The notes: generated from the sequence alone by a model not told the origin. A stretch of 64,000 nucleotides of DNA from Phaeosaccion multiseriatum (GCA_965112735.1 OZ218964.1:1736001-1800000), one strand, 5' to 3'; counted from the stretch's first letter, positions 31,237-48,772 are shown. Translations and numbers: made by a program.

Positions 31237-33789
31237 TTACAAGACGCGATAGGCTAGCTGCACGTCCTCCATCTCCTCCTCCGCCCTGCCTACCCCGCCC
31301 CCGACTCCCGTCCAGTGCTGCGTCCCCGCCTTGGCCGAGGTCGGAGCGGACTCGACCCCGAGTCTGATCCTGCAGACCACCCGCTGGCCCGGCAGTAGCC
31401 AGGGGGGGGGGCACACGCACACGTCCACGACCCCCGACAAGCCAGGGGCAAGCTTCTGGGGCACGTAGGCGAGCTCCACTCCCGCATCGAAGCTTTCATC
31501 TTCGACGAAGTCACTCGCATCATCAGTTTCAGGTTCTCGTTCGTCGTCCGGGTTGTTGTCGTTCTTGCTCTCCTCTTCCTCCTCCTCCTCCTCCTCCTCC
31601 GCTTCTTCCTTCTCCTCCTCTCCAAAGACCTTCGTGCCAAGAGCCTCCCCCCCTGTAGCTGCCCTTTCACAATCTTTGCTTTCTATGTTCTCGCCTCGCT
31701 CTGGCACTACTAGTGCTGCTGAAGCTCCTCCTTCTCCTTGCTCTTGCTGTCGCGCTAGTGGCCTCTCCGTGCCGCCATTGCTCTCCAGCAGCTTCACTGT
31801 GGACATGACAATCTTCCGCGGGCTTGCATTGCAGATGATCAGTCGACCCCTTGTCTCACAGCCTTTCTGAAGCAGCCCCATGTCTATACATAAGCCTGGT
31901 GCTGCTACTGCTGTCCCGGCACCCCCTTCCCTCACTCCTCCTCCTCCTCCTCCTCCTCCTCCTCCTCCTCCTCCTCCTCCTCCTCCTCCTCCTCCTCCTC
32001 CTCCTCCTCCTCCTCCTCCTCCTCCTCCTCCTCCTCCTCCTCCTCCTCCTCCTCCTCCTCCTCCTCCTCCTCCTGTTGCTGCGCACAGAGTGTGCACCGT
32101 CTCCGCTGTAAGCCCCTGTCGCCGCCGCTGCTGCTGCTGCTGTATCATCAACTGCTGCTGCTGCGGCTTGTATAGCTGCGTTTTCCCTGCGATACAAGGG
32201 CTCCGTATCCACCATCGCTGTAGACTACTTCCGAACTGAGAGGCCAAGGCTTCACGCTGTGCCGGACAGAAGCCGTCCTCCAGGAAAGTGTGCCCCGCTG
32301 CTCCGACCTCCTCGCAACCACTCACTTGGTCACCGCGTTCATCCCTGCGCCATAGTGAAGGCGAAGTCGACGACTCAAGGGAGGATGTCGACGACAACGA
32401 TGACGACGACGACGAGGAGGAGGAGACGGCGGCGGAGGACGCCCGACGAGTGCGGCAAGGCCATTCAGGCGAGTCCGTCTTGAGAGCATCGGTCGACGTC
32501 GGGCGAAACTGCACATGCTGTTGTTGTTGCTGCACAGAGGCGGATGCAACAGTCCCCTCCGCTGCTATGCCAGTAGCGACAAACCTCTCCTCCGCTAGTG
32601 CTGCTGCTGCTGCTGTTGCTCCTGCTGCTTCGGACGGCGCCGTAGACATGCTGTCGTCGCTTCCTCGCATGGACGGGAGGGAAAGCCGCCACGTGGCTCC
32701 TCCTACCGTTCTACGCGTCCTCCCTTCATCTCCTGTGCCGTACAAAGTCTGTCGGGGAGAGGTGGTTCCCTCCGAACAGACCAGCCGCCTCGCCAGTGAC
32801 GCCTGCTTCTCCATCCGGAGTTGGTCGGCGTGGGCAGTCTCCAGCATAGCCCGGGGGTTGTGGGGTGGCACCCTGTTGTACCTGGCCACTGTTGCCCTCC
32901 CCACTGTCTGCAGTCTCTGCTTTACCAAGGTAGCGCTGTCTAAGTGCAGCACCTCGACGAGTGCAGCCAGCTTCTCAGGACCTGTCGCTCGTCCCTCCCT
33001 ACGGCATGATCGAGTGGATACCAGAGGGCGACGGGGCGACAAGTCTGTGGCCGCTCTCTCGAACGCAGGATGCGAGAAGATGACAATGGCAAGGACACTC
33101 AGCATGTCCACGAAGCCCGTGAAGGGAAGCTGGCCCCGTCCCTTCTCATCATAGTGGAACTTGTCCACCACCTCAGCGGCGGAAGGCCTACCACGCGCCT
33201 GCATTTCGGCCCGCTTTACCCGCTTCCTTGCATACCACTTCCACAGCCGATGGAGAATGTGTTTGTTCATCAGGTTGGGCACTATCTTAAAGTCTCGTGC
33301 GAAGCACAAGAATTCGAACCACGTCATGGTATCGCGAGACCACTTTACTTGCTCAAAAGTTCGGTTGCTGCTGCCAGTGTATTGACCACTCCCAGAGGGG
33401 CCTGTGAGACAACAATAGAAGCGAAAAATGATCTCGACCGGACCCTGCGGCTGTCGCTGCCTCGATTCTGTTTCGATGCTCCCTCTGCAGTTCTTTCCAC
33501 GATGATACAAATCGCTGCCGGCACAGGGGACTTGGTGCATCCATGACACTTTCATCAGAAAGTTGTCCCGCGGCTGCTGCTTGCGCTGGTGGTGAGATAG
33601 TCTGTGATGATGGCGATGCTGCAGAGGTCGGGCCTGCCTCCTGGTGCTGCTGGTGGCGGCCCCGTGCGCTGCTGGCGGACGACACGGTTTGCGTGCCACC
33701 TTGTTCGTCTCTACAATTCCCTCTGCGTGCCTGAGCTGGCGAAGCGCTCCTCGAATCAGCGAGCTGGGCTCCATCTTGAGTTCTGGCAT
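31237..33789 (-). CDS. Uncharacterised 850-aa protein; EF-hand-like helical region and C-terminal ASH/PapD-like Ig fold suspected
   Basis: Single long ORF. MTWFEFLCFARDFKIVPNLM...LPFTGFVDML looks like a degenerate EF-hand pair. IDMGLLQKG...LIICNAS...KLAPGLSGVVDV resembles ASH/MSP domains. Contains a ~46-Gly (GGA)n tract. Domain calls are tentative. Confidence 0.6.
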   Translation of the reverse strand: MPELKMEPSSLIRGALRQLRHAEGIVETNKVARKPCRPPAAHGAATSSTRRQARPLQHRHHHRLSHHQRKQQPRDNFLMKVSWMHQVPCAGSDLYHRGKNCRGSIETESRQRQPQGPVEIIFRFYCCLTGPSGSGQYTGSSNRTFEQVKWSRDTMTWFEFLCFARDFKIVPNLMNKHILHRLWKWYARKRVKRAEMQARGRPSAAEVVDKFHYDEKGRGQLPFTGFVDMLSVLAIVIFSHPAFERAATDLSPRRPLVSTRSCRREGRATGPEKLAALVEVLHLDSATLVKQRLQTVGRATVARYNRVPPHNPRAMLETAHADQLRMEKQASLARRLVCSEGTTSPRQTLYGTGDEGRTRRTVGGATWRLSLPSMRGSDDSMSTAPSEAAGATAAAAALAEERFVATGIAAEGTVASASVQQQQQHVQFRPTSTDALKTDSPEWPCRTRRASSAAVSSSSSSSSSLSSTSSLESSTSPSLWRRDERGDQVSGCEEVGAAGHTFLEDGFCPAQREALASQFGSSLQRWWIRSPCIAGKTQLYKPQQQQLMIQQQQQRRRQGLTAETVHTLCAATGGGGGGGGGGGGGGGGGGGGGGGGGGGGGGGGGGGGGGGGGGGGGGVREGGAGTAVAAPGLCIDMGLLQKGCETRGRLIICNASPRKIVMSTVKLLESNGGTERPLARQQEQGEGGASAALVVPERGENIESKDCERAATGGEALGTKVFGEEEKEEAEEEEEEEEEESKNDNNPDDEREPETDDASDFVEDESFDAGVELAYVPQKLAPGLSGVVDVCVCPPPWLLPGQRVVCRIRLGVESAPTSAKAGTQHWTGVGGGVGRAEEEMEDVQLAYRVL

Positions 33790-34249: not shown

Positions 34250-37200
34250 ATGGGTGACTATGGGCAGCCTTCGTCACCGGGAGGAAGGGACAGGAGAGGG
34301 AGCAACATGGGGCAGTACGGAGCCTCTATTATGGGTTCCCCTCGAACCATGGTACCTCCTCCTATTGTCGCACCTTCTGGTATGCCTGATATGGGCATGG
34401 ACCTCGCCAGCCCGGGCGGGCTCAGCAGCCCAGGCGGAGGAGGGGGTGGTGGGAGGCGAAGGAGAAGACAGCAGAGGGATGATCTTTCTGCCTCTCCCGC
34501 CGGCAGCAGCTATGCGGCGGAGCCCTCATCTCCGACGTCGTTTGGGAACTTCGACCAGCAGCAGGCAATGCCATCCTCGCCCTCGGGCTATCCCCCAATA
34601 CAACAGCCCTCCCCTAGCTTCGGGCAGGCGTCCCCCGTCAACGACTTGCAACATATGGGTATGGGAGGAGGGGGATACGGCCAGCAGACACAGCATATGC
34701 AGCCCGGCTACATGCAGATGCAGCAACCCCCAGCCGTGGTGTCCCCGACGAACTATGGGCAGGTGCAGCAGCAGCAGCAGCAGCAGCAGCCAGCTCCCAT
34801 GAATTATGCGCAGTCAGCTTCTCCGACCAGCTATGTGCCGTCCCCGGGAGGCGCGCGCCGCAGGCGCGACAGCGCTTTGACAGCGGACGATGGAAGCCCG
34901 AGCCCAGTGCGGCGAAGACGAGACAGCGCTTTGACCTTGTCCCCCGGAGGGAGCACACAGGCCGAACAGCTACCCATTTCACCAATCGTTTCGCCCTCTG
35001 CAAGTCCAGTGGGCAGCCCGAAGGTGGGGCGCCAGCAGACCATGGGGCGAGTGGGATTCGTTGGAATCGAAAATGCTGGCGGCGGTTCAGACTACGATGG
35101 CGGGGTGGAGACGGTGGGACTGAATGAGAGATCGGTGCTCATTCGCAACCCCGGCGAGCTCAAGGACTTTTTGGAACAAAAGAATAACGACCTTGTCAAG
35201 TCGCACAAGCGTCGAGAGGCGGAGCTGGAAGGCATGATGGAGAAGGACACGTAAGTTTCTCATCTGTTTCTCAGGAGGGAAGGAGAACCGGTGAAGCGGC
35301 GATTCCGAGAGAGAGAGAGAGAGAGGCTGGGTAGAGAGCGCAGTAGCATGCGCGTTTGCGTATTTGATCAGGGACACCGCCCGGGAGGCGTGATGCGAAC
35401 TAACCCCCCCCACGTCCTTGCCCCTCCCTCGCTCCCTCCCTCCGTTCCTCCCTCTGCCGCGCCCCCAGAATGTACCTGAAGGCCCTACTGCAGGAGGAAA
35501 CGGAGAGATTCGAGGAACACATGCTGCAGCAGATAGGAACGCCCAAGGGGACAGACCTCGGCAGCGGCAATGGCAGAAGAGGCAGTGCGGGGGGGGGGAG
35601 GCGCGCTAGTAGGAGGCCGTCGGCGGCCATGGAGATGCCCTACGCCCGCGAGGAGAAGAAGAAGATGGACGAATTTCTTCGGGAGAGGGGTCTTCTCGTC
35701 AAGAAGCTCGAGATGGTAAGAGGAGTCTGTCGGTCAGTCAGTCAGATCAATTAGCCAGTCAGTCACTTAGTCAGTCAGCCAGTCAATCGGTCTCAGGCGG
35801 TCAGTCAGTCAGTCAGTCGGTCGGTGAGGTGGACTCGGGATGCAGCTGCGGCAACAAGAGCAACCGAAGGTCCCTTCCATTTTTTTTTCTCTCTCTCTCC
35901 GTCCCTTCCTCTCGCCCTCTTTCCCCCTCCCTCCCTCCTTTCATCTTACCTCATTCCCACGCTCCCTCCCTCACTCCCTCCCTCCCTCCCTCCCTCCCTC
36001 CCTCCCTCCTTCCCTCCTTCCCTCCTTCCTCCCGTCCCTCCCTCCATCCCTGCCTCGCTCACTCACTCACCACCGCACGCACGCACTCACTCTCCAACTC
36101 GCGCACGCACTCACTCACTCTCTCACTCCCCCACTCCAGTACCACAAAGAATGCCGACAGAAGAACTCCAAGAAAATCTCCGTGGAACAGCAGCGCGTGG
36201 ACCGTACCCTCAAATCCTTCATAAGCAAGTACACCAACCCTTCTCAGCGCTCCCTGGTGGTTCGCAGCGTGGCCGAGTATGTCAATGGAGACGAGTGGAT
36301 GAAGATGGTCACCATGAGCCCAGACTACACGAGCCCAGACTACGTCAGCCGGGGCCCCGAGAGCCTAAACGCTCTCATTGTCGAGGCGGGCTTTAAGCCC
36401 ATCGGCAAGACGACGGTGGACGAGTTTGGAGAGGAGATGAACGCTAGGCTGGCAGGGCTTGATGCCGCCAAGCTAGACCGCATGAGGCGCCAGGCTGCTC
36501 AGGTACGCACACACGAACGCACGCACGCATGCACACACGCACGCACGTGACGAACGAGAACCTGCACTCACGCAAGTGATGAGGAGCGGGAGCACGCGTC
36601 TTTAGCTCTTTGCCCCAAGAGTTTGTGTTCTCTCTCTCTCTCTCCTTCCCTCTCTCCCTCTCTCTCTCCCTCTCTCTCCCTCTCTCTCTCTCTGTGTGTG
36701 TGTCACTATGTCACACCGATTCTATCCAACGAAAACGCCTGTGCTCGCTTCCTATCCATCACCGCTGCGTATGCTCCTCAACTCCTTAACTATCAACTTG
36801 GCTCACTCTCCTCTCCTCTCCTCTCCCCTCCCCTCCCCTCCCCTCCCCTCCTCTCCTCTCTTCTCCTATCCTTCACCCCCCGCTCCCTTGGAACTTGATG
36901 GTTCTCTTCTCGCTCTCTCCGCAGGCGCTGGAGCAAGCCAAGCATGCAGAGGCCATGCGGAGGCAGACCGAGGAGAACGCTCAAATTGCCGAGGAGTACA
37001 GGTGCGTGGACTCTCTTTGTTTGGCTTTGCTCTTTGCTTTGCTTATCTTGACTTAGCTTTCCCTTGTGTGGCTTTTGTGTGGCTTTGCTTTGCTTTGCCC
37101 TGCCTTGCCCTGCCTGGCGCTCTGCTTGGCGCGGCTTTTGCCTTGCTTTGCCTTGCTTTTCTGTTTTGTTTGCGCCCCCCGCCCCCTCCTCCCTGACCCG

Positions 37201-40200
37201 CGGAGCTTGCACTGAGGATTTTTCGTAAGTGACCGCCCACTCTCCTTCTCTTCTCTCCCCCACACTGCCCGTATCGAAACGAAAACACTCCTTCCCCATC
37301 CCCAGAGCGAAGCAAGCGGCCGAGAAGCTCCGCGAAATGGAGAGCCTCCGTCTGCAGTACGAGAGAGAGGCAGAGCAGCAGAGGCTCCTCTTGGACCAGC
37401 ATCACAGGGAGGCCGAGGAGAGGGCGCTGGCCACGCAGAAGCAGCACGCAGAGAACGCAGAGAGGGAGAGACAAGACAAGGAGAGAAAGATGCAGGTGGG
37501 TGGGGGGGGGAGGTGGACTCGCGGATTGACCTTGACTCGCATCGAGCGCTCATAGACCTCACACGCATGCACGCGCGCGCACACACACCCTCACACAGTT
37601 GTGCACCCACACACCCACACACGAACCAATGCTCTTTACTTCTCCTCCTTCTCGCAAATATACGTAAAACCACATCACACCACACCACACCACACCACAC
37701 CGCAGGAGTACATCAGTAAACTCGAGCAGGAGAAGCACCAAGCAGAGATGCAGCGCAGAGCCCGAGTGGCGGAAATGGAGCAGGAGATGGCACGGCTCGA
37801 GCAGGAGAAGCAGAGCGTGTCAGCAGCGGTGCAGGAGGAGACAGCGACGCGTATGAAGGGTCTTCATGCAGAGGTGGAGCGCGAGCGGAGTGTGATGATG
37901 GCGGATCTGAAGAAGGCAGAGGAGGAGGCCCAAGAAGCGAGGAGCAGAATGGAGGAGCAGGCACGGCAGGAGGCAGCGGAGACGGCGGCCCGTATGAAGG
38001 TGGGCAGGGGGGGGGGGTCATGGTGTATGTATGTGTGTATAGAGAGCAGTGAGGTAGGCAGGCAGGCAGGCAGGCTGGCAGTCAGGCAGGCAGGTAGGCA
38101 GAGGAGAGAGCGTTTGGTACTTCGCCGTCCCTCCTTCCCTCTCTCGCTCTCACTCCCTCGCCCCCCACGCTGGAAGGCGCCTACACGAGCGCGCGCACGA
38201 TCTTGCTTCTTTTTCGCCGCGCGGTCGCACTCTCATCACTCATTCCTCTTATCACACACTGTGGTCACACTGCGGTCACATGTTCATCACTCTTATCACA
38301 CTGCGGTCACACCCTCATCACTCTCAATACTCACATTGCTCTCATTAGGCGAATATGGAGGCCGACCTCGCTGCGTTACAGAAGGAGGCGGAGGAGCGCA
38401 AGGAGGAGATGGAGAGGGAGGAGAAGCAGGCCCGAGAGGCAAGGGAGAGGGCCTTGTCAGAGGTGGAGCGGGTCAAGAAGGAGTCCGAGGAGGCGAAGGA
38501 GAAGGTGCAGAAGGAGGTGGAGCAGGCCAGAGAGGCGGCGGAGGAGGCTAAGAGGGAGCTCGAGGAGCGGCTGATCCTGCAGGAGAAGGCGCTGGAAGAG
38601 AGGCACAAGAAGAGCCAGCACCTCCTCCCCCCTGGGGCCGACGGAGGAGGAGGAGGAGGGGGAGGGTTGAGTGCGGAGGCGGAGAAGGCTTACGAAGAGG
38701 AGCTGCGCAAGCACGAGGAGGAGCTTGCGAAGCGTAAGGCGGAACTTGCAAAGCACAAGGAGGAGGGGGAAAAGCACGTACAGGAGCTGGCGCAGCGCAG
38801 GCAGCAGGCCGAGGAGATCAAGGCCGAGCTCAAGAGGGAGATAGAGGAGGCCGCACAGGCCAACCAGGTACATACGCATGTTCCACATACACTCTCACGT
38901 TCTTGTTCCCCTTGTGGAGACTGACCGACTGACTGACTGACTGACTAGCTCGCTGACTGATTCACTGAGTCACCGAGTCACTGACGCACTTACTCACTTA
39001 CCGTGTTGTCGTCCCTCACGCACCAGGCGGAAATCGAAAAGATGCGCAGGGAGCAGGCGGAGGTGCAGAAGCAACGAGACGAAATGGCGCAGCAGCTCGC
39101 CCAGGTGTCAGAGGCGGCAGGTGAGGGGAGAGAGACTAGAGAGAGAGATAGAGAGAGAGATACTGAGAGAGAGAGAGAGAAAGAGAGTCGGTGGGTCGGT
39201 CAGTCGGTGGGTCGGGGGTGTCAGGACAAGAGCACCGAATCACAGCGCACGAGGCTTTCTTTGGTGCTCTTTGAAGGCTCTCGCTCACTCTCACGCCAAT
39301 ACCCTTTTGGCGTCCTCTACTTTCTCCCTCACTACGAGGCAAATATGATACACTCTCTGAACAATGTATCCCTGCCCCTGCCCCGTCTCTCTCTCTTTCC
39401 TTCTCTCTCTCTCTCATTCTTCCTCTCTCTCCCCATCTCTCTCTCTCCCCCCCCCCCCTCTCTTTCTCACCAGAGCCGCAACACGCTGAGATGGACGCCC
39501 GTCTTGCGCAGCAGCAGGAGGAGCTCACCGCGCAAAAGGAGAAGTTCGAGAAGGAGTCACAGTTGGCAAGGGCGGCGCTGGAGGAGGACATGGCCAAGGC
39601 AGAGAGCGACGCACGGGAGGCCCGGGATAAGATAAGGCAGGAGCTGGAGGAGCAGAAGCAAGAGCTCGACCGGGTAAGGAGGAACGGAGGGGGGTGGAGA
39701 GGGAGGGTAGGGAGGGAGGAAGGGAGGGAGGGAGGGAGAGGCAGAGAAGTGGAAGGAGGATAGGGCCGGGGCTAGGGGAAGTTTGCATGGACACGCCTTC
39801 GATCGTGTGTGGTGGGAGTGGGGCAGAGAAACGGAACGGGGCGGGGCGGCGAGGACATCAAAAGGGGTCGTCCGTTATACGTCCAAAGATCCTACTCGAC
39901 TTGTTCCCGGTATTCATCTCGGTGTCTGCGTGCGTGTGTGCGTGCGTGTGTTTGTGCGTGTGTGCGTACGTGTGTTCATGTGTGCATGCGTATGCGTGTG
40001 TGCGTGTGTGGGTGTGTGTGCGTGATGATGACGATGATGACGATAGGTGCGGAAGGAGCAGGAGGACATTGCGAGCCTCAAGGCCGAGCACGAAGAGGCC
40101 ATGGCCCAGACCGAGCTCGACAAGCTGGAGCAAGAGGCACTGCTGTTAGGACTGACCGGAGATATTAAGAAGATCCGGGAGGAGCGGGATAGAGAGGAAG

Positions 40201-43200
40201 AGGAGGCAAAGAAGGCGGGCAGAGGAGGAGGAGAAGGGGGGGCCGACAAGGAGAAGGACGAGACTAGAGTGGACTTTCTGCAGCTAGAGGGGGAGAAGGC
40301 CGCGAGGATGATGGCGGAGGCAGAGGCAAAGGAGGCCCAGCGCCAGGCGGAGGAGGCACAGAAAGAGACGGAAATGGCACAGAAGGAGGCGGAGGCGGTG
40401 CGGCAGGAGCTGCAGAAGCTTTTGAAGGAACAAAAGAGTCAAAAGGAACTGCTTAGTGCGGTGGATGCGGCTGCTTCCCGGAGTGTGGAGGAGGAGGAGG
40501 CGAAGGAGAAGGAGACGCAAATGGAGATTCAAATGCTGAAGGCGCAGGTGGGGACGGAAGAGGAGAAGGCGAAGAGGATTGAGGCGGAGAGAGAGGCGCA
40601 CGAAGCGAGGGAGGAGCTGCAGCGACTGAAGCTGCTCAAGGCTGTCCTGGCGGCCCAAAACGATAATGACCTGACGCAGTTACAGGAGCTGATGGATCGA
40701 GATCCGGGCCTTGCCAACGACCCGGAGCTGGCAAAGATCCTCCGAGGAGAAGATCAGAAGAGCAAGAGCGGGGCCGGGGTCGGAGGGCCGGGCGCGTATG
40801 GTCGGCAAGAGAGCGAGGCGGTCGACTATCGTGGCAAGTACCTGGGAAATATGAAGAACAAAGCCGTTGGGCAGCTGCCGGCCAAGCCGAGGGGGGATGG
40901 AGGGGACAAGGACGAGGATGGCTCCTCGGCAGGAGGAGAGAGTGGACGCGGTGGCAGCCATGGCAATCGCAATGATGATGATGAGGGCGATGGGGAGGGC
41001 GAGGGTGACGGTGAGACCGATGTGATGGTCGAGCTGCCGGGTACCGCCGAGATTTCTCGGGCACTACAGGCCAACGAGGAGATATCCATGGACGACTTGC
41101 TGGACGTGTTGCTCTTCAAGAGACTGAACCAGGCCAAGGAGGACGAGCGAGCGGCGGTGCTGAAGGCGCAGGAGGAGAGGGCTGCTTGGAACCCCACGGC
41201 CAACGTGCCAGACCCAGAGGAGGCAGAGAGGAAGCTTGACGAGGAGAAGCTCGCTAAGGTACATGCCGAGGCCGAGGCGGCGGGGAAGGGGGCGATGGCG
41301 GCAGCAGCGGCGGCAGCGGTGAGTGGCACCAAGCAAGGGAAGTTGGAGGCTAAAGCTGCGGCCAAGGCGGCGAAGGCAGCGAAGAAGAAGGAGGCAGCCG
41401 CGGATAAGAAGCAAGCCGCACTGGATGCAAAGGCGGAGAAGAAGAAGACCAAGAAGGCCAAGGCCAAGGGCAAGGGCAAGCGCAAGGGAAACAAGGTGGT
41501 GCCAGGGGACGAGGGCGGCCCTGAATCACCGACTGGCTCTGCTGCTATTAGGGCTGCCGCCGGAGCCGCCGGAGCCGCCGCCACCGCCGCCCAGGCTCCA
41601 GGTCCGAAGCCTCCAGGCAGCCCGTCTGCCGCAGAAAAGGCTGCTACGGCAGCTGCAGCAAACAAGGATCTGGATGCCTTCACCAGCACCACCAATATGG
41701 GAAAGAAGGCCAAGCCCCTGCCGGACGGGCCCATGGCGGCGTCCGCTCTCTCCCAAACCACACTGGAGCTCACTTCCACCAAGAGGGCCCCTGCCGCCAA
41801 CTTGGTGGGCAAGTTGGGCTTCCTGCTACCCACTTCCAAGTCGCTGAAGCGGCGGCGCTCCTTCCCCATTGTCGGGTGTGAGGTGGGACGTTTCCCTCCC
41901 GGAGAAGGAGAGGGAGGAGGAGGTGAAGGAGGAGGAGGAGGAGGAGGAGGAGGAGGAGGAGGAGGCGAAGACCAGGTAGAGGCACTACTCATGGGAGGTG
42001 CCGGCGTGTTCCAGACCGAGGTGGTGCCGTGGCGAGGCTCGGCGGTGCCCACACCCATAGGCCGCTCCCTGCTGGGGCTGGGGGGTGGAAGGGCAAGACG
42101 TCCTTCCATGACGCCGGCGCAGGTGGTGCAGCAGCCCTTCGGAAACACGGCGGGGGTGTCCTTCGCACTTCCTGGGGGGGACGGTGACAACAAGGACAAG
42201 AACGCGGCGCTAGGAGGAGGGGCAGGGAACGTTCCGCGACCTCGTCCTCGGCAGCGGCGGGACAGTCTTCTACCCACGGACTCTCTTATCAAGCAGCCCA
42301 AGTTCTGCAGAGATGCTTTCTGCGACCCCGACGCTGCGAGTCGAGTTGTGTTGTCAACCAAGGCCATGCGAGCGCGTCTAGCCGCGTTGGAGAAGCAGGG
42401 CGGGGGGGGAGGAGGCGAAGGAGGGAAGGGAAGTGGGCGTGGGAATGCAGCGGTGCAGAAAGCATTGGCACAGCAGCGCATGCTCTGTAAGCCGATGGAG
42501 GAAGTGGAGCGGTTGGTGAAAGAGGCCATTGACAAGCAAGAAGCGGGGTGGGCGGAGAAAGACAAAGCAGAGGCCAAGAAGATGAGAGAGGCATTGGCAG
42601 TGCAGCAGGAGAAGGAGGAGGCGCGCCTCAGGGAGGAGCGTGAGAAGCGGCGTGAGGCGGCCAAGCAGTCAGCCGAGGAGAAGGCCGCGCAGGACGCACT
42701 TCGAGACAAGTTCCGCTCGGGTGTGCGGCGGCGGAGCTTCGGCACCACGCCGCCTCCGGAGGACCTACTTGCAGCCATGGAGGCGGGAGACGGAGGAGGA
42801 GGAGGAGGAGGGGGAGGGGGAGGGAAAGGGAAGGAGGAGGAGGAGGAGGAGGAGGAGGTGCTCATCAAGCGTAAGCGCACGGGCCCGGACTCTGTCAAGC
42901 TTAAGCAGATGCGCGAGGCGGAGTGGAAGCTTGGCCTCTACCCACCGGCACATGGCCTGCTGGTCAGACGCATGTCCTTTGGAGGGTTGACGAGTTCCGG
43001 AGGAGGGGTTGCGGGGGAGGGACAGCACTATCGTCAGAGGCGTCGCCAAGCCGCGCTCATATTCGACGCCCTATTGACTGGGCAGGAGGTCGGTTGGGAC
43101 GGAGCGGCCAAGAAGAAGAAGGAGGAGGCCGCGAAGAAGGGCAAGGAGGAGGGGGAGGCAGGGGATAAAGTGGGCGAGCTCAAATCCTTTGGAGGGCGAG

Positions 43201-46200
43201 AAGGGGGGAGGAGGAGGAGCTCCTTCTTTGGGGGCCCGGGGGCCTTCAAGAGGCAGCTCACGAGGGTGCTGAGTGTTGGAGGATCGACTGCCTCACTACA
43301 GAGGAAGTACGGGCCCAATGGAGAGCCCCTGGACAAAGACCGACGGCGGCCCAAGCTCAAGCGCGGGGTGAGTGAGCTCTTGGCCGAGGTGGTGTTGGGG
43401 AAAGCCTCCAAAGCCACCAAGACGCGAAGGGCGAGCCAAGACCACAAGCCAGGGGGGGGGGAGGACAACTCTCAATTCGCTACGCAGGACGTGTGTGACT
43501 ACGAAACCTTTTTCCATAACAAGCGAAGGCACATCTTCGAGCCACAGGAGATGGAGATTTACGCGTCGGGGTGGTGGATTCGCTTCTGTGCCGTCGCCAA
43601 CCTCATCTGCGCGTACTTCTACTTCTACTGGCGGTGGACCGAGTAAGTCAGTAGTCGGGAGGGTGGCGGAGTGTGGAGGGAGAGAGAGAAGGTTAGAGGA
43701 CAGAGTAGAGAGAGAGTAGAAGAGAAAGATGGAGAGAGTAGTGCATTCCAGCGGTTACCTTCTGTCCATCCGTCCATCCGTCCATCAGCTCATCTGTCCA
43801 TCATACCAGCCCCTTCGTCTGCCTCCACAGTCCCTTGTCTTCTCACCACCACCACCTCCTCCTCCTCCTCCTCCTCCTCCTCCTCCTCCTCCTCCTCCTC
43901 CTCCTCCTCCTCCTCCTCCTCCTCCTCCTCCTCCTCCTCCTCCTCCTCCTCGTCCTCCTCCTCCTCCTCCTCCTCCTCCTCCTCCTCCTCCTCCTCCTCC
44001 TCCTCCTCCTCCTCCTCCTCCTCCTCCTCCTCCTCCTCCTCCTCCTCCTCCTCCTCCTCCTCCTCCTCCTCAACAGGAGTATGATCGATGCTGCCCTGCC
44101 CAACTGGGCGTACACCTTCTTTGTGGCCGAGGCCATCATGGTGTTTGGCTTGCAAATGGGGCACTTGGGCAGGAGCTTCCCCGTGCACCGGCCAGAAGTC
44201 TTTATGGACGATCTCATTGACTTAGACCCCAACATGTCCAAGCTAAGGGTAAGATTGGTACCTACTTGTCCTTTTTCGGGTTCCCCTTCGTGTCCTATTT
44301 GGGGTACCTGCTTGTCCTGTTTGGGGTACCCACTTGTGCTTGTGGAAACTTACCTGTTCTTGGGGGTTCCTGTATGTATGTGTGTATAGTGTGAGTGGTG
44401 AGTGTGTTTGTGTATTTAGTTGCTTGGCGCGCGCGCAATTTTTATTTCCTTTGGTATCTATTGAGAAGAGAGACCTCAACACCTTCTCTCCCCTCCTCCC
44501 GCCTGCTTTGTGAAGGTGTGCGTGCTCATCCCCACCGCGGGCGAGAAGCTTTGGGTGCTGCTCCAGGCCATGTTCGGTGTGTATAACCAACGCCTGTGGC
44601 GAAGTGACTTGCCCCGGAAGGACCTGCTCCGAGTGGTGGTGCTGGATGAAAAGAGGAGACCTCAGGTGGTGCAGCTGGTGAGTGACGGGGGGAGTGAGTG
44701 AGGGGGCGAGGGAGGGAGGGAGGGAGGAAGGCAGAGTGAGTGTGTGAGTAAGTGAGTGAGTGTGAGGGTGTGAGGGTGGGAGAGACGGAGTAAGTGAATG
44801 AGTGCGTGCGTGCGTGCGTGCGTGAGTGGGTGGGAGAGACGGAGTAAGTGAATGAGTGCGTGCGTGCGTGAGTGCGTGCGTGCGTGCGTGAGTGAGTGAG
44901 TGAGTCGTTAGTGAGGGAGAGAGTGAGTGAGTGAGTGAGTGATTGAGTGTCCCACCCCCCGCCACCTCACCCACCCCATTTCCGCCCCACAGGTGAGCCT
45001 GGTGTACACCCTGTCGGAGATCTGCTTAGAGAAGACCGTCCGCACCGTGCTGAAGGACGAGGGCGTGTCTCCCCTGACGGCCAGAGGGTTTTACGACTTT
45101 TACGCCAACCAAAACCATCGCGGAAACCTCAAGGAGGCGAGCCGCATGAGCTGCGTGCGCTTCATTCGAGGGGTGGAGGTGGTCAATGAGATTGACTCTC
45201 TCCTCGCCACCAACGATGACGCCGCCAATCGCTTCTCCACCAGCGCAGCGGTGGGTATCTTGCTGGTCTCGTCATTTTCTCTCCCTTGTCTCTTTTCTCC
45301 TTCTCTCTCCTCCTCTCTCGGGCCTTCGGGCACGCTCTCGCTCTTGCCTTCCACCCTTCGCCCTCCGCCCTCCGCCTTCCGCCCTCCTTCCTTCGCCCTT
45401 CGCCCTTCGCCATTGATCCATGCTTTGATCCCCTCCCCCTGCTGCTAAGCTGCCCCCCCTCCTGCCAACTGTACCACCAACTGCTACACCAGGTGGACGA
45501 GGTGCACAGGAAGGCCCGGCGCGCATCCTGCTTCAACGCGGGTAAGGCCGTGGCCGTGGAGCCTGGCGTAGAGCGACGTTGGGCCCGGCGCAGCCAGCTA
45601 CCCACACTCATCTACTACAGCCGCGTCAATGCAGGAGAGCCGCGTATCTCTCCCAAGGCAGGCAACATGAATGCTGCTCTCTTTATCCAGAGCAAGCTGG
45701 CCCCGGAGCCCCTTGTGGGCAGCGCAGCCTTGGTGGTGGTCAATGACGCCCGGCACGAGCTGTATCCGGACTTTGTGCAGCGTACGGCCCCGTACTTCTT
45801 CACGTGGAACGACATGCGCAAGGAGTACAAGTGAGTGAGGCTTGGTTCGGGTAGGGGGGGGGGGGTTGTCGTTGGCTTTGAGAGAAGGGTTTAGGAGGCT
45901 TTCTATTGCATGGGAGAGAGGGAGAGAGGGAGAGAGGGAGAGAGATTGAGCGCCTGCTTCCCCTCTCTCCTCTCCTTCCCTCTCCTCGCCCCCACCCCCC
46001 GTCCCTCCCCTCCTAGCTTCGGCCCTGTCCTGACACCCCTCTTCCCAACCCCCCCCCTCCTCGATCCCCCCAGGTGGGCTGATGTGGCCTTTGTGCAAGT
46101 GCCTCAGCGCTTCTTCGACGTGCGTACGTGGAACGATCCCGACCCCCTCGGGAACCAAGGCGTCACGCAATTCGACCTCGTCAACTGCGGCAGGGACGGG

Positions 46201-47052
46201 GCGGGAGGGGTCATGAGCTGCGGGCAGGGCAGCGTGTGGCGCACACAGGTACTTCGAGATGGTATCCGCCCCGATGGGACCAAGTTCCTGCCCAAGGGCA
46301 AGCCCCAGGAGGCCATGATAGGCTTCGACCTCGGCTTCCGCTCACAGGTATGTTGGTCTGGATTGGGTGTGGTTCAGTTGGCTGTGGTTGGGTTGGGTTG
46401 GGCTGGATCGGGTTGGATTGGGCTGGGTTGGGGTGTTCGGGGGTGGAGGGTTGCTTGGGTGCTTGCCCTCGTGTGCGTGTGCATACGTGTGCATACGTGT
46501 GCATACGTGTGCTTACGTGTGTGCGCAGCGTGTGGGCGTGCTTGTGCGGAAGCGAGTTTGCGTGTGTGTAGGAGGATGTCTATGGGGGGGCTCCCCTCCT
46601 CTTCTGACGCTTCCACTCACTCTCCTCTTTTTCTAACGCTTCTTCTTCCCTTTCCGCTTCCGTTTGCGTTGATTGGCATTTGCCACGGCCCTTCGTTGTC
46701 TTTCCCTTCCGTCCATCCCTCCCCCCCCCCAAAACCCCCTACCCTTCCCATCATTCCCATCCCTCCTCTCCTCCGTCCGATCCCTTCCCCCCACCCGAAG
46801 GTGCTGATCGAAGACACACATACGAGCATTGAGCTGTTCCAACACGGCTGGAGGAGCGTGTACATCAACCACCCCGGGGAGTGGCTTGCCTCCTGCACCA
46901 TGCCGCCGGATAACATCAAGTGGCGGGTCAAGCAGGTGAGCAACTTGCATATGCATATATACACGCTACTCTACTCCTTCCTCCACTACTCTGGATGGGG
47001 GGGATGTAGTATGTGAGGGTCTCGATCGTCGACTCTATCACTCGCGCACGTA

Positions 47053-47119
<67 letters not shown>

Positions 47120-48280
47120 CGGACGCACGCACGCACGCACGGACGCACGGACGGACGCACGGACGCACGGACGCACGCACGATCCCATCTCCCTCGTCCT
47201 CACTCGCCCTCTCGCCATTGTTGTGTGTATGCACATGCCACACTCGACCTCCCCTCCTCTCCTCCCTCTCTCGCTACCTACCAGGTGCTCCGCTGGCACC
47301 AGGGTGCCGTACAGCTTGCTGTCTTCAACGGATGGCCCTGGATCTTCCGCGGCGAGCACTACGCCAGCATGTGGCAGCGCTGGTTCGCCCTCGACGCCGT
47401 CTCCTACTTCCTCCAGGCCTTTGCTGGCATGGTGCTCCTGCTCTTTCCTGTGGTGTATGGCTTCACCCAGGCCTCTCCCTTCAACGCGGTGAGCATGAGC
47501 TTTGCTGTGTACTTTCTCCCCTTCATCATCACGGCCACGCTGCCCACGGTGGCCGCTCTGGGGTGGAGGGGCACCTCTTCGATGAAGGTGATGAGGGATG
47601 AGCAGATTTGGTTCTGCACCTCGTACGTGCAGGTGTACGGCGTCTTCAACGTTGTATGGACCAAGGTGAGAAGAGGAGTAGGAAAGGGCGCTGATGGGGG
47701 GGGGACGGTTCGAGGGTGTGTGGGGGTTATTCTTGGGGGGAGGGGGCTGGGGGGGGCGCAGCTCCAAGTCTCCAGGGAGGGACGCGCAAGAGGCAGAAAG
47801 TACAGAGACAAAGCGAAGCCCATCATTGGATCCATTTGACTCGCACGAAAGACTCGCTAAGCTTCTCTCCTCCCGCTCCTGCTACTCTTTCCAACCCTTT
47901 CTTGCCTTCGCTTTGCTTTGCTTCGCTCTCGTGCTCGTGTGCTTACGCAGCTGATGGGCAAGGATCCGTCGGACGCGTGGAGAGCGAGCTGCCCTGTGTG
48001 GCCCATGTACGGTCTCTTCTTCGCCATCATCGCAGGCTTCTTCATGAACTTCTACTTCTTCGTGCAGCGCGAGTTCGAGCTGCCCTGGACCTGGGTGTCG
48101 TGCTCGGGCGCGTGCTGCTTTGCCATGCACTCGCTGTGGCCCATGGTGTCCTTCGGGTTGGGCGTCACCACGCCCCCAATGTACTACCTTCGTATCTTCG
48201 GGCTCCTCACCATCATGCTTCTGGTGGGCTTTTGGATGGCCACCGCGGATGCAACTACCGTGTCTGCACCGAGCTCCTAA
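34250..48280 (+). CDS. Giant cellulose-synthase-like processive GT2 glycosyltransferase (~2,876 aa) with ~2,150-aa N-terminal coiled-coil/disordered extension
   Basis: 18 GT-AG exons, all phase-compatible, total 8,631 nt: 34250-35250, 35469-35715, 36140-36502, 36925-37001, 37306-37495, 37706-37999, 38349-38867, 39027-39120, 39474-39673, 40047-43642, 44077-44248, 44516-44677, 44993-45250, 45493-45830, 46074-46347, 46801-46935, 47285-47665, 47951-48280. Two N-terminal TMs (YFYFYWRW), IPTAGE, VLDE, PKAGNMN, NDARH, FVQVPQRF, SCGQGS, IEDTHTS, QVLRWHQG, then several C-terminal TMs. Confidence 0.85.
43855..44071. repeat. (CCT)n microsatellite, ~72 units, forming the polypyrimidine tract of GT2 intron 10
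   Basis: Direct reading; abuts acceptor CAACAG at 44076. Confidence 0.95.
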
Positions 48281-48406
48281 ACTACCTAGTTAGGTAGCGA
48301 CGTAAATAGTCATTCTGACTGACCGTACAGATAGAAGTTAGATTGGGTGTGCGTGTGTGAGGAGAGGGTGATGCTGGCTGATGGCAGCCGTGCAAGTCGA
48401 TGAATA

Positions 48407-48630
48407 AGGAGGAGGAGGAGGAGGAGGAGGAGGAGCAGGAGGAGGAGGAGGAGGAGGAGGAGGAGGAGGAGGAGGAGGAGGAGGAGGAGGAGGAGGAGGA
48501 GGAGGAGGAGGAGGAGGAGAGGAGGAGGAGGAGGAGGAGGAGGAGGAGGAGGAGGAGGAGGAGGAGGAGGAGGAGGAGGAGGAGGAGGAGGAGGAGGAGG
48601 AGGAGGAGGAGGAAGAGGAGGAGGAGAAGG
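48407..48630. repeat. (GGA)n microsatellite between GT2 3' end and retroelement relic
   Basis: Direct reading. Confidence 0.95.
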
Positions 48631-48772
48631 AGGAAGGAGAGTTTGATGATCACGACGGATACCCACCTTCGCGCCGTCGTAGTATCACAGTAGGATGGGC
48701 ATCAGTAAAGTCAAGGTTCCTAAATAAATGGAGGACTTCGACACACAACACTGGACTTTCGACACATAACAC

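Follow-up and report, generated by a model that had tools for sequence, protein, structure and literature searches.

A predicted cellulose synthase gene with a long N-terminal arm in Phaeosaccion multiseriatum and its relatives in brown algae and xanthophytes

Plant cellulose synthase (CESA) is a processive family 2 glycosyltransferase (GT2) with a QxxRW motif, and its cytosolic N-terminus mediates oligomerisation and is phosphorylated. In CesA and bacterial BcsA, the segment before the first membrane helix (TM1) and the glycosyltransferase domain both face the cytosol. To our knowledge, the positioning and guidance of cellulose synthase are known only in land plants, through microtubules, CSI1 and the RING-finger N-terminus. 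Brown algae have no cortical microtubules; their cellulose is oriented along cortical F-actin by no known linker, and they and their relatives build linear terminal complexes (PMC10488008). A CESA family specific to brown algae and their relatives is separate from oomycete CesA (PMC8307928), and the products of the brown-algal GT2 enzymes of the CESA and CSL types are unassigned, with mixed-linkage glucans or mannuronan possible for some (PMC11468063). Synthases fused to a motor are described as well: in a survey of myosins, the polysaccharide-synthase myosins are chitin-synthase fusions only, of fungal class V/VII and of mollusc/annelid type (PMC3942036). The subject of this study is an 18-exon gene at 34250-48280 on the + strand of a window of 64,000 nucleotides (nt) from the alga Phaeosaccion multiseriatum (GCA_965112735.1 OZ218964.1:1736001-1800000); all positions are counted from the first letter of this window. 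The gene is predicted to encode a synthase of the brown-alga/xanthophyte CESA family joined to an arm of ~2,165 amino acids (aa), and homologous arms are found in brown algae and xanthophytes.

Gene model and splice structure

The gene was rebuilt manually, using stop-to-stop frames, peptide anchors and the DNA of the junctions. Each of the 17 introns (159-453 nt) has GT at its start and AG at its end, and the reading frame is kept across every junction, which confirms the 18 phase-compatible exons proposed in the initial annotation. The coding sequence of 8,622 nt runs from the ATG at 34250 to the TAA at 48278-48280 and gives 2,873 aa. The ~2,165 aa counted upstream of TM1 agree with the ~2,150 aa estimated initially. 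The exons and motifs are as follows (arm HMM, profile hidden Markov model of brown-alga and xanthophyte arms; E, expectation value; A1-A3, alignments; TM2, second membrane helix).

34250..35250, + strand: exon 1, start codon and P/S/Q/G-rich disordered head, three R[RK]x[ST] sites (motif count)
35135-35248, + strand: last ~40 aa of exon 1, first conserved helix of the head module (arm HMM E 2e-5, A2)
35469..35724, + strand: exon 2, head-module helix continued (collinear HMM match, weak, E 0.05; A2)
35572-35595, + strand: conserved phosphosite-like motif GRRxSxGG, in exon 2
36140..36502, + strand: exon 3, small conserved helical domain with KYxNP ... GDE ... SPDxV (HMM E 6e-19; A1, A2)
36925..37001, + strand: exon 4, start of the charged helical rod (splice sites, phase, composition)
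37306..37495, + strand: exon 5, charged helical rod
37706..37999, + strand: exon 6, charged helical rod
38349..38867, + strand: exon 7, charged helical rod, heptad z 3.1 (weak blastp match to the brown-alga rod)
39027..39104, + strand: exon 8, charged helical rod
39476..39673, + strand: exon 9, charged helical rod
40047..43642, + strand: exon 10, charged helix (aa 1-219), ~930 aa of mostly low-complexity linker, proximal motifs and TM1
42303..42341, + strand: anchor motif F..F[CM]DPD[AT]A[SA] (A3 with Ectocarpus, Scytosiphon, L009 and L010)
42963..42989, + strand: anchor motif RR[ML][ST]FGG[LI], a basophilic-kinase-type site (A3)
43500..43631, + strand: pre-membrane motif ETxxHNxxRx[IV]FEPQ, then the aromatic-rich TM1 at 43572-43631 (invariant columns of A3)
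44077..44248, + strand: exon 11, TM2 (contiguous with the exon 12 equivalent in L009)
44516..44677, + strand: exon 12, start of the glycosyltransferase domain, IPTAGE at 44528-44545 and VLDE at 44639-44650
44993..45250, + strand: exon 13, variable insert of the glycosyltransferase domain, conserved within the arm-bearing clade only
45493..45830, + strand: exon 14, KAGNMN at 45655-45672 and NDARH at 45742-45756
46074..46347, + strand: exon 15, VQVPQRF and SCGQGSVWR (PF03552, 17.5 bits)
46801..46935, + strand: exon 16, IEDTHTS with the catalytic Asp; its last codon is the Q of QxxRW
47285..47665, + strand: exon 17, VLRW of QxxRW, interface helix and membrane helices (PF03552, 20.7 bits; tree; hydropathy)
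47951..48280, + strand: exon 18, final membrane helices and TAA stop

The junction between arm and synthase lies within exon 10. Its frame is open over 1,199 codons (40047-43646), with the charged helix at one end and TM1 at the other, so that this exon of 3.6 kb without a stop physically joins the two parts, as had been proposed. In the other two + frames across the same DNA the longest open stretch is <=174 aa; thus the exon 10 frame is not a chance open reading frame (ORF). The GC content at third codon positions is 0.67-0.85 in the exons versus an overall GC of 0.48-0.64 in the introns, and the arm exons resemble the GT2 exons in this respect.

Comparison with relatives bears on both ends of the model. 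Exons 11-18 abut collinearly on relatives that are intronless or derived from cDNA, and therefore the splice model of the GT2 half is verified. The collinearity extends from the C-terminus of exon 10 through exon 18, and in the last ~450 aa of exon 10 four anchor motifs align with the arms of the orthologues. At the other end, the C-terminus of exon 1, exon 2 and exon 3 tile the single continuous head module of the orthologues (A2). The junction of exons 1 and 2 falls where the orthologues run uninterrupted, and thus the head splices are supported. At the level of sequence it is established that 34250-48280 is one protein-coding gene for a membrane enzyme, with the arm and the synthase in the same gene, and we infer a single transcript over the 18 exons.

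Over 40048-41897, 41978-42778 and 42893-43760, independent contigs of genomic DNA that span exon 10 show no base difference. Deletions of 1 nt at 42080, 42402 and 43203 are seen in runs X2 and/or X4 and are absent from X1 and X3, which come from the same sample. All three fall within codon runs that are poly-Gly or of low complexity. They are probably assembly noise; a real deletion at any of these places would shift the frame. A 690-aa open frame also lies antisense to exon 10 (40826-42898, - strand). The purine-rich coding strand leaves few stops on the opposite strand, and this frame is therefore regarded as a shadow and not a gene. The skew of the coding strand in exon 10 reaches +0.43 for GC and +0.44 for AT.

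Catalytic half and its family

Searches were run with single exons or with natural full-length relatives. The C-terminal ~700 aa correspond to a complete processive GT2 enzyme of the brown-alga/xanthophyte CESA family; the motif signature, the topology and the relatives bear out the initial assignment of this module to the CesA family. Two membrane helices are followed by the glycosyltransferase domain and then by about six helices, with strongly hydrophobic segments in exons 17 and 18. TM1 at the end of exon 10 and TM2 in exon 11 were assigned by homology, as these aromatic-rich helices fall under the Kyte-Doolittle cut-off of 1.4.

In Pfam scans exon by exon, Cellulose_synt (PF03552) matches exon 15 with 17.5 bits (profile 234-289) and exon 17 with 20.7 bits (profile 465-575). 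The two matches are collinear and lie under the cut-off of 24.7. Full-length relatives pass this cut-off with 31.7-67 bits (Scytosiphon and more distant proteins), and the Ectocarpus sp. 4 model remains under it with 18.6. The HMMER check suggested initially thus gives sub-threshold matches with single exons of this gene and significant ones with full-length relatives other than the Ectocarpus sp. 4 model. A metagenome scan with exon 15 gave the intronless full-length relatives L001 (889 aa) and L002 (861 aa), which reach 62-65 bits for PF03552 and have plant CesA and CslF6 as their best solved-structure matches. Protein Data Bank searches with exons 14 and 17 singly gave no match, and a look-alike search of the ESM Atlas with exon 17 was uninformative. 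When exon 17 was scanned with HMMER against 1.84 billion representative proteins, only 63 clusters were found, and every significant relative belongs to the brown-alga/xanthophyte CESA family; those with names come from Vaucheria, Tribonema and Phaeothamnion. A wider search added the brown-algal proteins of Ectocarpus, Ascophyllum, Laminaria, Discosporangium and Choristocarpus, and proteins of Chrysoparadoxa and Heterococcus. A haptophyte origin, with a role in scale cellulose, was considered and rejected, since all relatives are from brown algae, xanthophytes and their allies.

The catalytic signature is present at homologous places (VLDE, NDARH, IEDTHTS and Q-VLRW, the last split between exons 16 and 17). 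The motifs PTAGE, LDE, KAGNMN, NDARH, QVPQRF, IED and QVLRW of this gene lie within 44528-47296, and PTAGE, LDE, KAGNMN, ND[ACV]RH, QxPQRF, IEDTHTS and QxxRW are common to essentially all of ~50 family members. The unusual forms LDE, NDARH and IED were considered as the mark of an inactive or special enzyme; this was rejected because they are family-wide.

According to the comparison with other synthases, the difference lies in the N-terminus. The other brown-alga/xanthophyte CESAs (Ectocarpus 'GT2', Tribonema minus, Vaucheria litorea) have the same catalytic signature and topology, whereas most have a cytosolic N-terminus of ~100-350 aa without a head module. Some are longer: Chrysoparadoxa australica P0101 (1,227 aa, of another clade) has an N-terminus of ~550 aa with an Ala/Gln-rich coiled-coil-like stretch and five RRxS sites, and Laminaria P0095 and Nemacystus P0099 have N-termini of ~700-850 aa with extra membrane segments. 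As judged from these protein models, long N-terminal additions recur in the family. Plant CESA structures (6WLB, 7D5K, 8VHT) are the best solved-structure matches of the family, and the relation is distant, with E 1e-11 for a full-length relative and nothing with single exons. Plant CESA has a RING zinc finger and P-CR/CSR, which the Phaeosaccion gene does not have, and the N-terminus of the latter is ~10x longer. In the case of the oomycete PH domain and the PilZ domain of bacterial BcsA, no Pfam match was obtained in any exon.

Cellulose or another beta-glucan is the probable product. It could also be supposed that the arm-bearing clade makes a beta-linked polymer other than cellulose (mixed-linkage glucan or another GT2 product) and that the arm works in its synthesis. 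In the tree, this clade stands apart from the main CESA clades of brown algae and xanthophytes, and it has its own insert in exon 13; the DxD motif is NDARH, and the unassigned brown-algal GT2 products may in part be mixed-linkage glucan or mannuronan (PMC11468063). However, the other CESA clades in these algae have the same types of catalytic and acceptor-side motifs throughout, and the closest solved structures are cellulose synthases. We therefore consider a non-cellulose product somewhat unlikely.

The arm and its orthologues

From the N-terminus, the arm consists of the P/S/Q/G-rich disordered head, the helical head module, a charged rod of ~670 aa, a linker of ~930 aa and the proximal anchors. 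Collinear matches of the arm HMM are found at the end of exon 1 (E 2e-5, profile 155-195), in exon 2 (weak, E 0.05, profile 197-266), in exon 3 (E 6e-19, profile 269-364) and at the end of exon 10 (E 3e-13, profile 1444-1508). Pfam scans over every arm exon detected no family; no RING or zinc finger (E <= 1), PH, PilZ or Myosin_head was found, in agreement with the initial remark that RING, PH, PilZ and motor domains are lacking. Hydropathy analysis detected no strongly hydrophobic segment in the ~1,175 aa that precede TM1 in exon 10. CesA/BcsA topology places the segment before TM1 in the cytosol, and the arm is thus predicted to be cytosolic.

The rod comprises exons 4-9 and aa 1-219 of exon 10, and its ~670 aa are about twice the length of the brown-alga rod. 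It is 42-49% charged and 15-20% hydrophobic, and nearly without Pro and Gly. Opposite charges at i/i+3 and i/i+4 are enriched, with z 2.3-6.0 in exons 5, 6 and 7 and the exon 10 segment E10a, and z 6.9-8.3 in the brown-alga rods. A hydrophobic periodicity of 3.5 residues is significant in exon 7 only (z 3.1; <1 elsewhere) and in Scytosiphon (z 4.1). Both z values are home-made scores and not the output of a trained predictor. The 'heptad-type coiled coil' of the initial annotation thus becomes a charged helical rod with a salt-bridge pattern, in which the heptad periodicity is weak and confined to exon 7. A single alpha-helix spacer of the ER/K type may fit the rod at least as well as a coiled coil does.

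R-[RK]-x-[ST] sites number 15 in the arm (three in exon 1, three in exon 2 and nine in exon 10), against ~1.6 expected. This enrichment recurs in the arm of every orthologue, and several sites are at conserved positions. The linker in exon 10 contains poly-Gly, poly-Glu and Ala/Lys runs and three further short helices. Four anchors are shared with all orthologues, namely F..F[CM]DPD[AT]A, RR[ML][ST]FGG, RR[RP]SF and ETxxHNxxRx[IV]FEPQ..AS.WWIR, and insertions specific to the Phaeosaccion gene lie between them (A3). The homology of the proximal arm emerged only with this motif-anchored alignment; a word-index search gave no match for the part of exon 10 before TM1, and comparison of exon 10 with the L009 arm ORF by BLASTP yielded nothing above noise. 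One short match (KRTGPDSVKLK / KRTGSVALKLK) was discarded as chance, being out of order relative to the other anchors. The pre-membrane motif and TM1 match the orthologues with E 1e-16 to 1e-19 in tblastn/blastp searches. In the case of exon 3, the values are 1e-15 to 3e-18 by tblastn against the metagenome contigs L009, L010 and L011, and 4e-16 to 6e-16 by blastp against Ectocarpus and Scytosiphon.

The AlphaFold model of exon 3 alone was unusable (predicted local distance difference test, pLDDT, 48). The Ectocarpus head module is predicted as two helices of ~60 residues and a small helical domain (pLDDT 71). BAR and I-BAR entries among its structural matches were not counted as evidence, as they are generic helical hairpins.

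In a maximum-likelihood tree of exon 17 only (127 columns), the gene falls into a clade of eight rows with support of 100/98, so that the GT2 phylogeny proposed initially places it among the arm-bearing proteins. The clade takes in Ectocarpus, Scytosiphon and Heterococcus-like proteins and those of Chrysoparadoxa, Tribonema minus (KAG5176027.1) and Discosporangium. Compared exon by exon, the gene is 57-58% identical to this clade versus 42-49% to other clades. The members with enough upstream sequence carry a homologous arm, and thus the search of related genomes for the same fusion, also proposed initially, found it in brown algae and xanthophytes.

Full-length brown-alga models are available from Ectocarpus sp. 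4 AP-2014 (CAM9345497.1, 2,106 aa) and Scytosiphon promiscuus (CAM9105606.1, 2,171 aa). Both are labelled 'unnamed protein product' and were found inside 90% clusters, and the exons lie collinear on both. Their order is an RRxS-rich disordered head, the helical head module, a charged rod of ~340 aa and four Tudor/SH3-like repeats, followed by the DPD motif, the KRRMTFGG motif, TM1 and the GT2 module. The two proteins belong to the same clade as the Phaeosaccion gene and have the same order of parts, and exons 11-18 are 48-73% identical. They differ in the arm, which is ~1,500 aa with the four repeats in the brown algae and ~2,165 aa without them in Phaeosaccion. CAM9857880.1 of Ectocarpus fasciculatus is a partial brown-alga orthologue. 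A contig of the NCBI assembly GCA_020357715.1 (L012, GC 0.54) has the same proximal arm elements over many exons and matches the partial E. fasciculatus protein P0096; the assembly looks brown-algal.

The closest relatives of exon 17 (68-69% identity) are the contigs L009, L010 and L011 of one JGI metagenome. A Heterococcus DN1 protein in EukProt shares 75-77% identity with their arm ORF, and therefore these contigs are assigned to a xanthophyte. The upstream ORF is 971 aa in L009 and 980 aa in L010, both cut by the contig end, and is complete in L011 with 1,266 aa. It holds homologues of exon 3 (E ~1e-15 to 1e-18) and of the end of exon 1, next an Ala/Glu/Gln-rich helical stretch, three Tudor-like repeats (sub-threshold in Pfam) and a Ser/Thr-rich tail. 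In L011, the head, the rod and the Tudor-like repeats are all within the single 1,266-aa ORF. In L009 and L010, a conserved GT-AG intron of phase 0 and ~220 nt connects the arm ORF with the TM1 exon. These Heterococcus-like genes share the head module (33-36% identity), the rod, the proximal motifs and the GT2 part with the Phaeosaccion gene. They differ in GC content (0.43-0.46 versus 0.60), in exon structure (an arm of one 1,266-aa exon and one short exon versus ten exons), and in having the three Tudor-like repeats and an Ala/Gln-rich rod. Between L009 and L010, the ratio of nonsynonymous to synonymous substitution rates (Ka/Ks) is 0.05 for the head, 0.07 for the rod, 0.16 for the Tudor-like region, 0.19 for the Ser/Thr tail, 0.20 for the proximal exon and 0.01 for the GT2 exon. 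With values of 0.05-0.20 across the arm parts, the arm is translated and under purifying selection in these xanthophyte relatives.

The charged rod follows directly after the head module in all three lineages. The alignments establish, for the predicted proteins, that the head, the position of the rod and the proximal motifs are homologous across three algal classes. The arm-bearing synthase is, on this comparative evidence, a real and conserved variant, and neither a one-off nor an artefact. The initial annotation had proposed an undescribed architecture in an alga. The architecture is not peculiar to Phaeosaccion, as homologous arms of ~1,500 aa occur in brown algae, in Heterococcus-like xanthophytes and in GCA_020357715.1. 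The architecture is therefore widespread, and in the literature searched, with subscription journals largely outside the scope, no description of the arm or of a myosin-cellulose-synthase fusion was found. Thus, the enzyme family is known, and the arm-bearing clade is new to the literature searched and is present in the databases as unnamed and often truncated or split models.

Such models (P0092, P0093, P0094, P0102 and P0110) bring up the question of two products: a promoter or start late in exon 10 would give a synthase of ~750 aa, and the upstream exons would form a separate soluble protein or belong to a minor isoform. Short models of the clade are compatible with this, namely P0092 of Chrysoparadoxa (724 aa), P0093 (701 aa) and P0094 of Discosporangium (788 aa). 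In the Heterococcus DN1 proteome of EukProt, moreover, the arm is a separate protein of 1,241 aa (P0110), and the public runs holding the stretch leave room for two transcripts, as no RNA run is among them. However, P0094 begins at a Met inside RRMTFGG and P0092 begins at the pre-TM1 motif. Since these starts fall inside conserved arm motifs, the two look like truncated models and not arm-less enzymes. Furthermore, the frame of 1,199 codons is open and conserved in its motifs for at least 450 aa upstream of TM1, the arm ORF and the TM1 exon of L009 and L010 are joined by the conserved phase-0 intron, and the two brown-alga models unite all parts. Two separate products are thus very improbable.

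Proposed function of the arm and surrounding DNA

Taking these results as a whole, we lean, with moderate confidence, towards a single arm-fused synthase gene of a conserved clade, in which the arm would act as an elongated scaffold under control by phosphorylation, with the head module and the proximal motifs as possible binding sites for partners. The rod would be a rigid spacer or a dimerising element, and would set the distance to a head-bound partner or the pairing of such partners. Candidate partners are neighbouring synthase subunits of the linear terminal complex, the trafficking machinery and cortical actin.

Several points weigh against this proposal. The boundaries of exons 4-9 are placed by splice signals, phase and composition alone, and composition is the sole homology support for these exons at the level of the sequence. 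The public sequencing runs that hold the stretch are four, from one sample; they include no RNA run, and their contigs contain introns, which identifies all four as genomic DNA. Dimerisation is not indicated, because the heptad periodicity is weak. Comparison of the head module with known structures gave only generic helical hairpins (Foldseek E >= 0.05; VIA-align Z <= 9.1, which is below the informative level for helical models). The part of exon 10 at aa ~220-750 aligns with nothing and may be an expansion that is tolerated but has no function. Neither the repeat HMM in any + frame of 33.8-44.3 kb (best E 0.7) nor tblastn detected the Tudor/SH3-like repeats, whose place in the arm is taken by low-complexity sequence, and therefore part of the ancestral function of the arm may be lost. 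As for the enzyme itself, Arg replaces the second Asp of the classical DxD throughout the brown-alga/xanthophyte family.

Some of these points would also suit an arm that is mostly neutral bloat, with only the conserved head and the proximal phosphosite motifs mattering, as a regulatory N-terminus like that of plant CESA. The rod and the low-complexity linker would then be lineage-specific expansions without a spacing, tethering or oligomerising role. The arm length varies widely (~1,500 aa in relatives versus ~2,165 aa here), aa ~220-750 of exon 10 are unalignable and homopolymer-rich, and the Tudor-like repeats are lost here with the open frame kept. The neighbouring gene at 31237-33789 on the - strand has long poly-Gly, poly-Ser and poly-Gln runs as well, so the genome tolerates such runs. 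However, all three lineages retain the charged rod behind the head module, and the Ka/Ks of the rod, 0.07 in the xanthophyte pair, is as low as that of the head. The salt-bridge register is also far above shuffled sequences, which argues for a maintained helix and not for random charge. An arm without a structural role is therefore doubtful, in our view.

A cytoskeletal partner of the proposed scaffold is plausible because cellulose is aligned with actin without a known linker in brown algae and because of a myosin fusion in the same family; from these two facts, the tethering or oligomerising role suggested initially gains indirect support only. This protein, P0081 (1,738 aa), consists of Myosin_head (517 bits), IQ, a short helical linker, TM1 and a CESA of the brown-alga/xanthophyte type. 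It is encoded by an intronless ORF at 429-5645 of L013, from a JGI metagenome, and at 380-5596 of L014, from an independent SRA run; both are genomic. P0081 falls into a sister clade of the same CESA family, and the motor is at the same N-terminal position as the arm. In the motor-fused synthases as in the Phaeosaccion gene, TM1 of a processive GT2 enzyme is preceded by a large N-terminal module in the cytosol. The Phaeosaccion gene, unlike them, has no motor, IQ or recognised cytoskeleton-binding domain in the Pfam scans.

A bolder form of this idea makes the arm-bearing clade the missing physical link between the rows of synthases, that is the linear terminal complexes, and cortical actin in brown algae, xanthophytes and their relatives, all of which lack cortical microtubules. 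On this view, the partner of the head would be actin or something associated with actin, with the rod serving as a stiff spacer or ruler and the RRxS/T sites turning the link on and off. The myosin-CESA fusion of the sister clade would be a second and independent solution to the same problem. We rate this link to actin as improbable.

Whichever partner is bound by the proposed scaffold, a conserved CESA clade of brown algae and their relatives with a cytosolic arm of 1,500-2,200 aa provides concrete and testable candidates, including those in Ectocarpus, which is genetically tractable. The truncated or split public models indicate that such arms are systematically missed by automated annotation. 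For the biology of algal walls the gene is of solid interest, and it is less singular than had been held at first reading.

Upstream of the gene, the divergent open frame at 31237-33789 (- strand) has 850 aa and no Pfam family. Between its start and that of the synthase there are 460 nt, and it is probably a neighbouring gene that shares a bidirectional promoter region. Repeats are present in the introns and the 3' flank. A (CTC)n microsatellite of ~120 nt lies in intron 10 (43953-44071), and a CACGCA-type repeat that translates as 'ARTH' repeats lies in intron 16 (47020-47160). Directly 3' of the stop, a purine-rich triplet repeat (48400-48700) reads as poly-Glu, poly-Arg or poly-Gly, depending on the frame.

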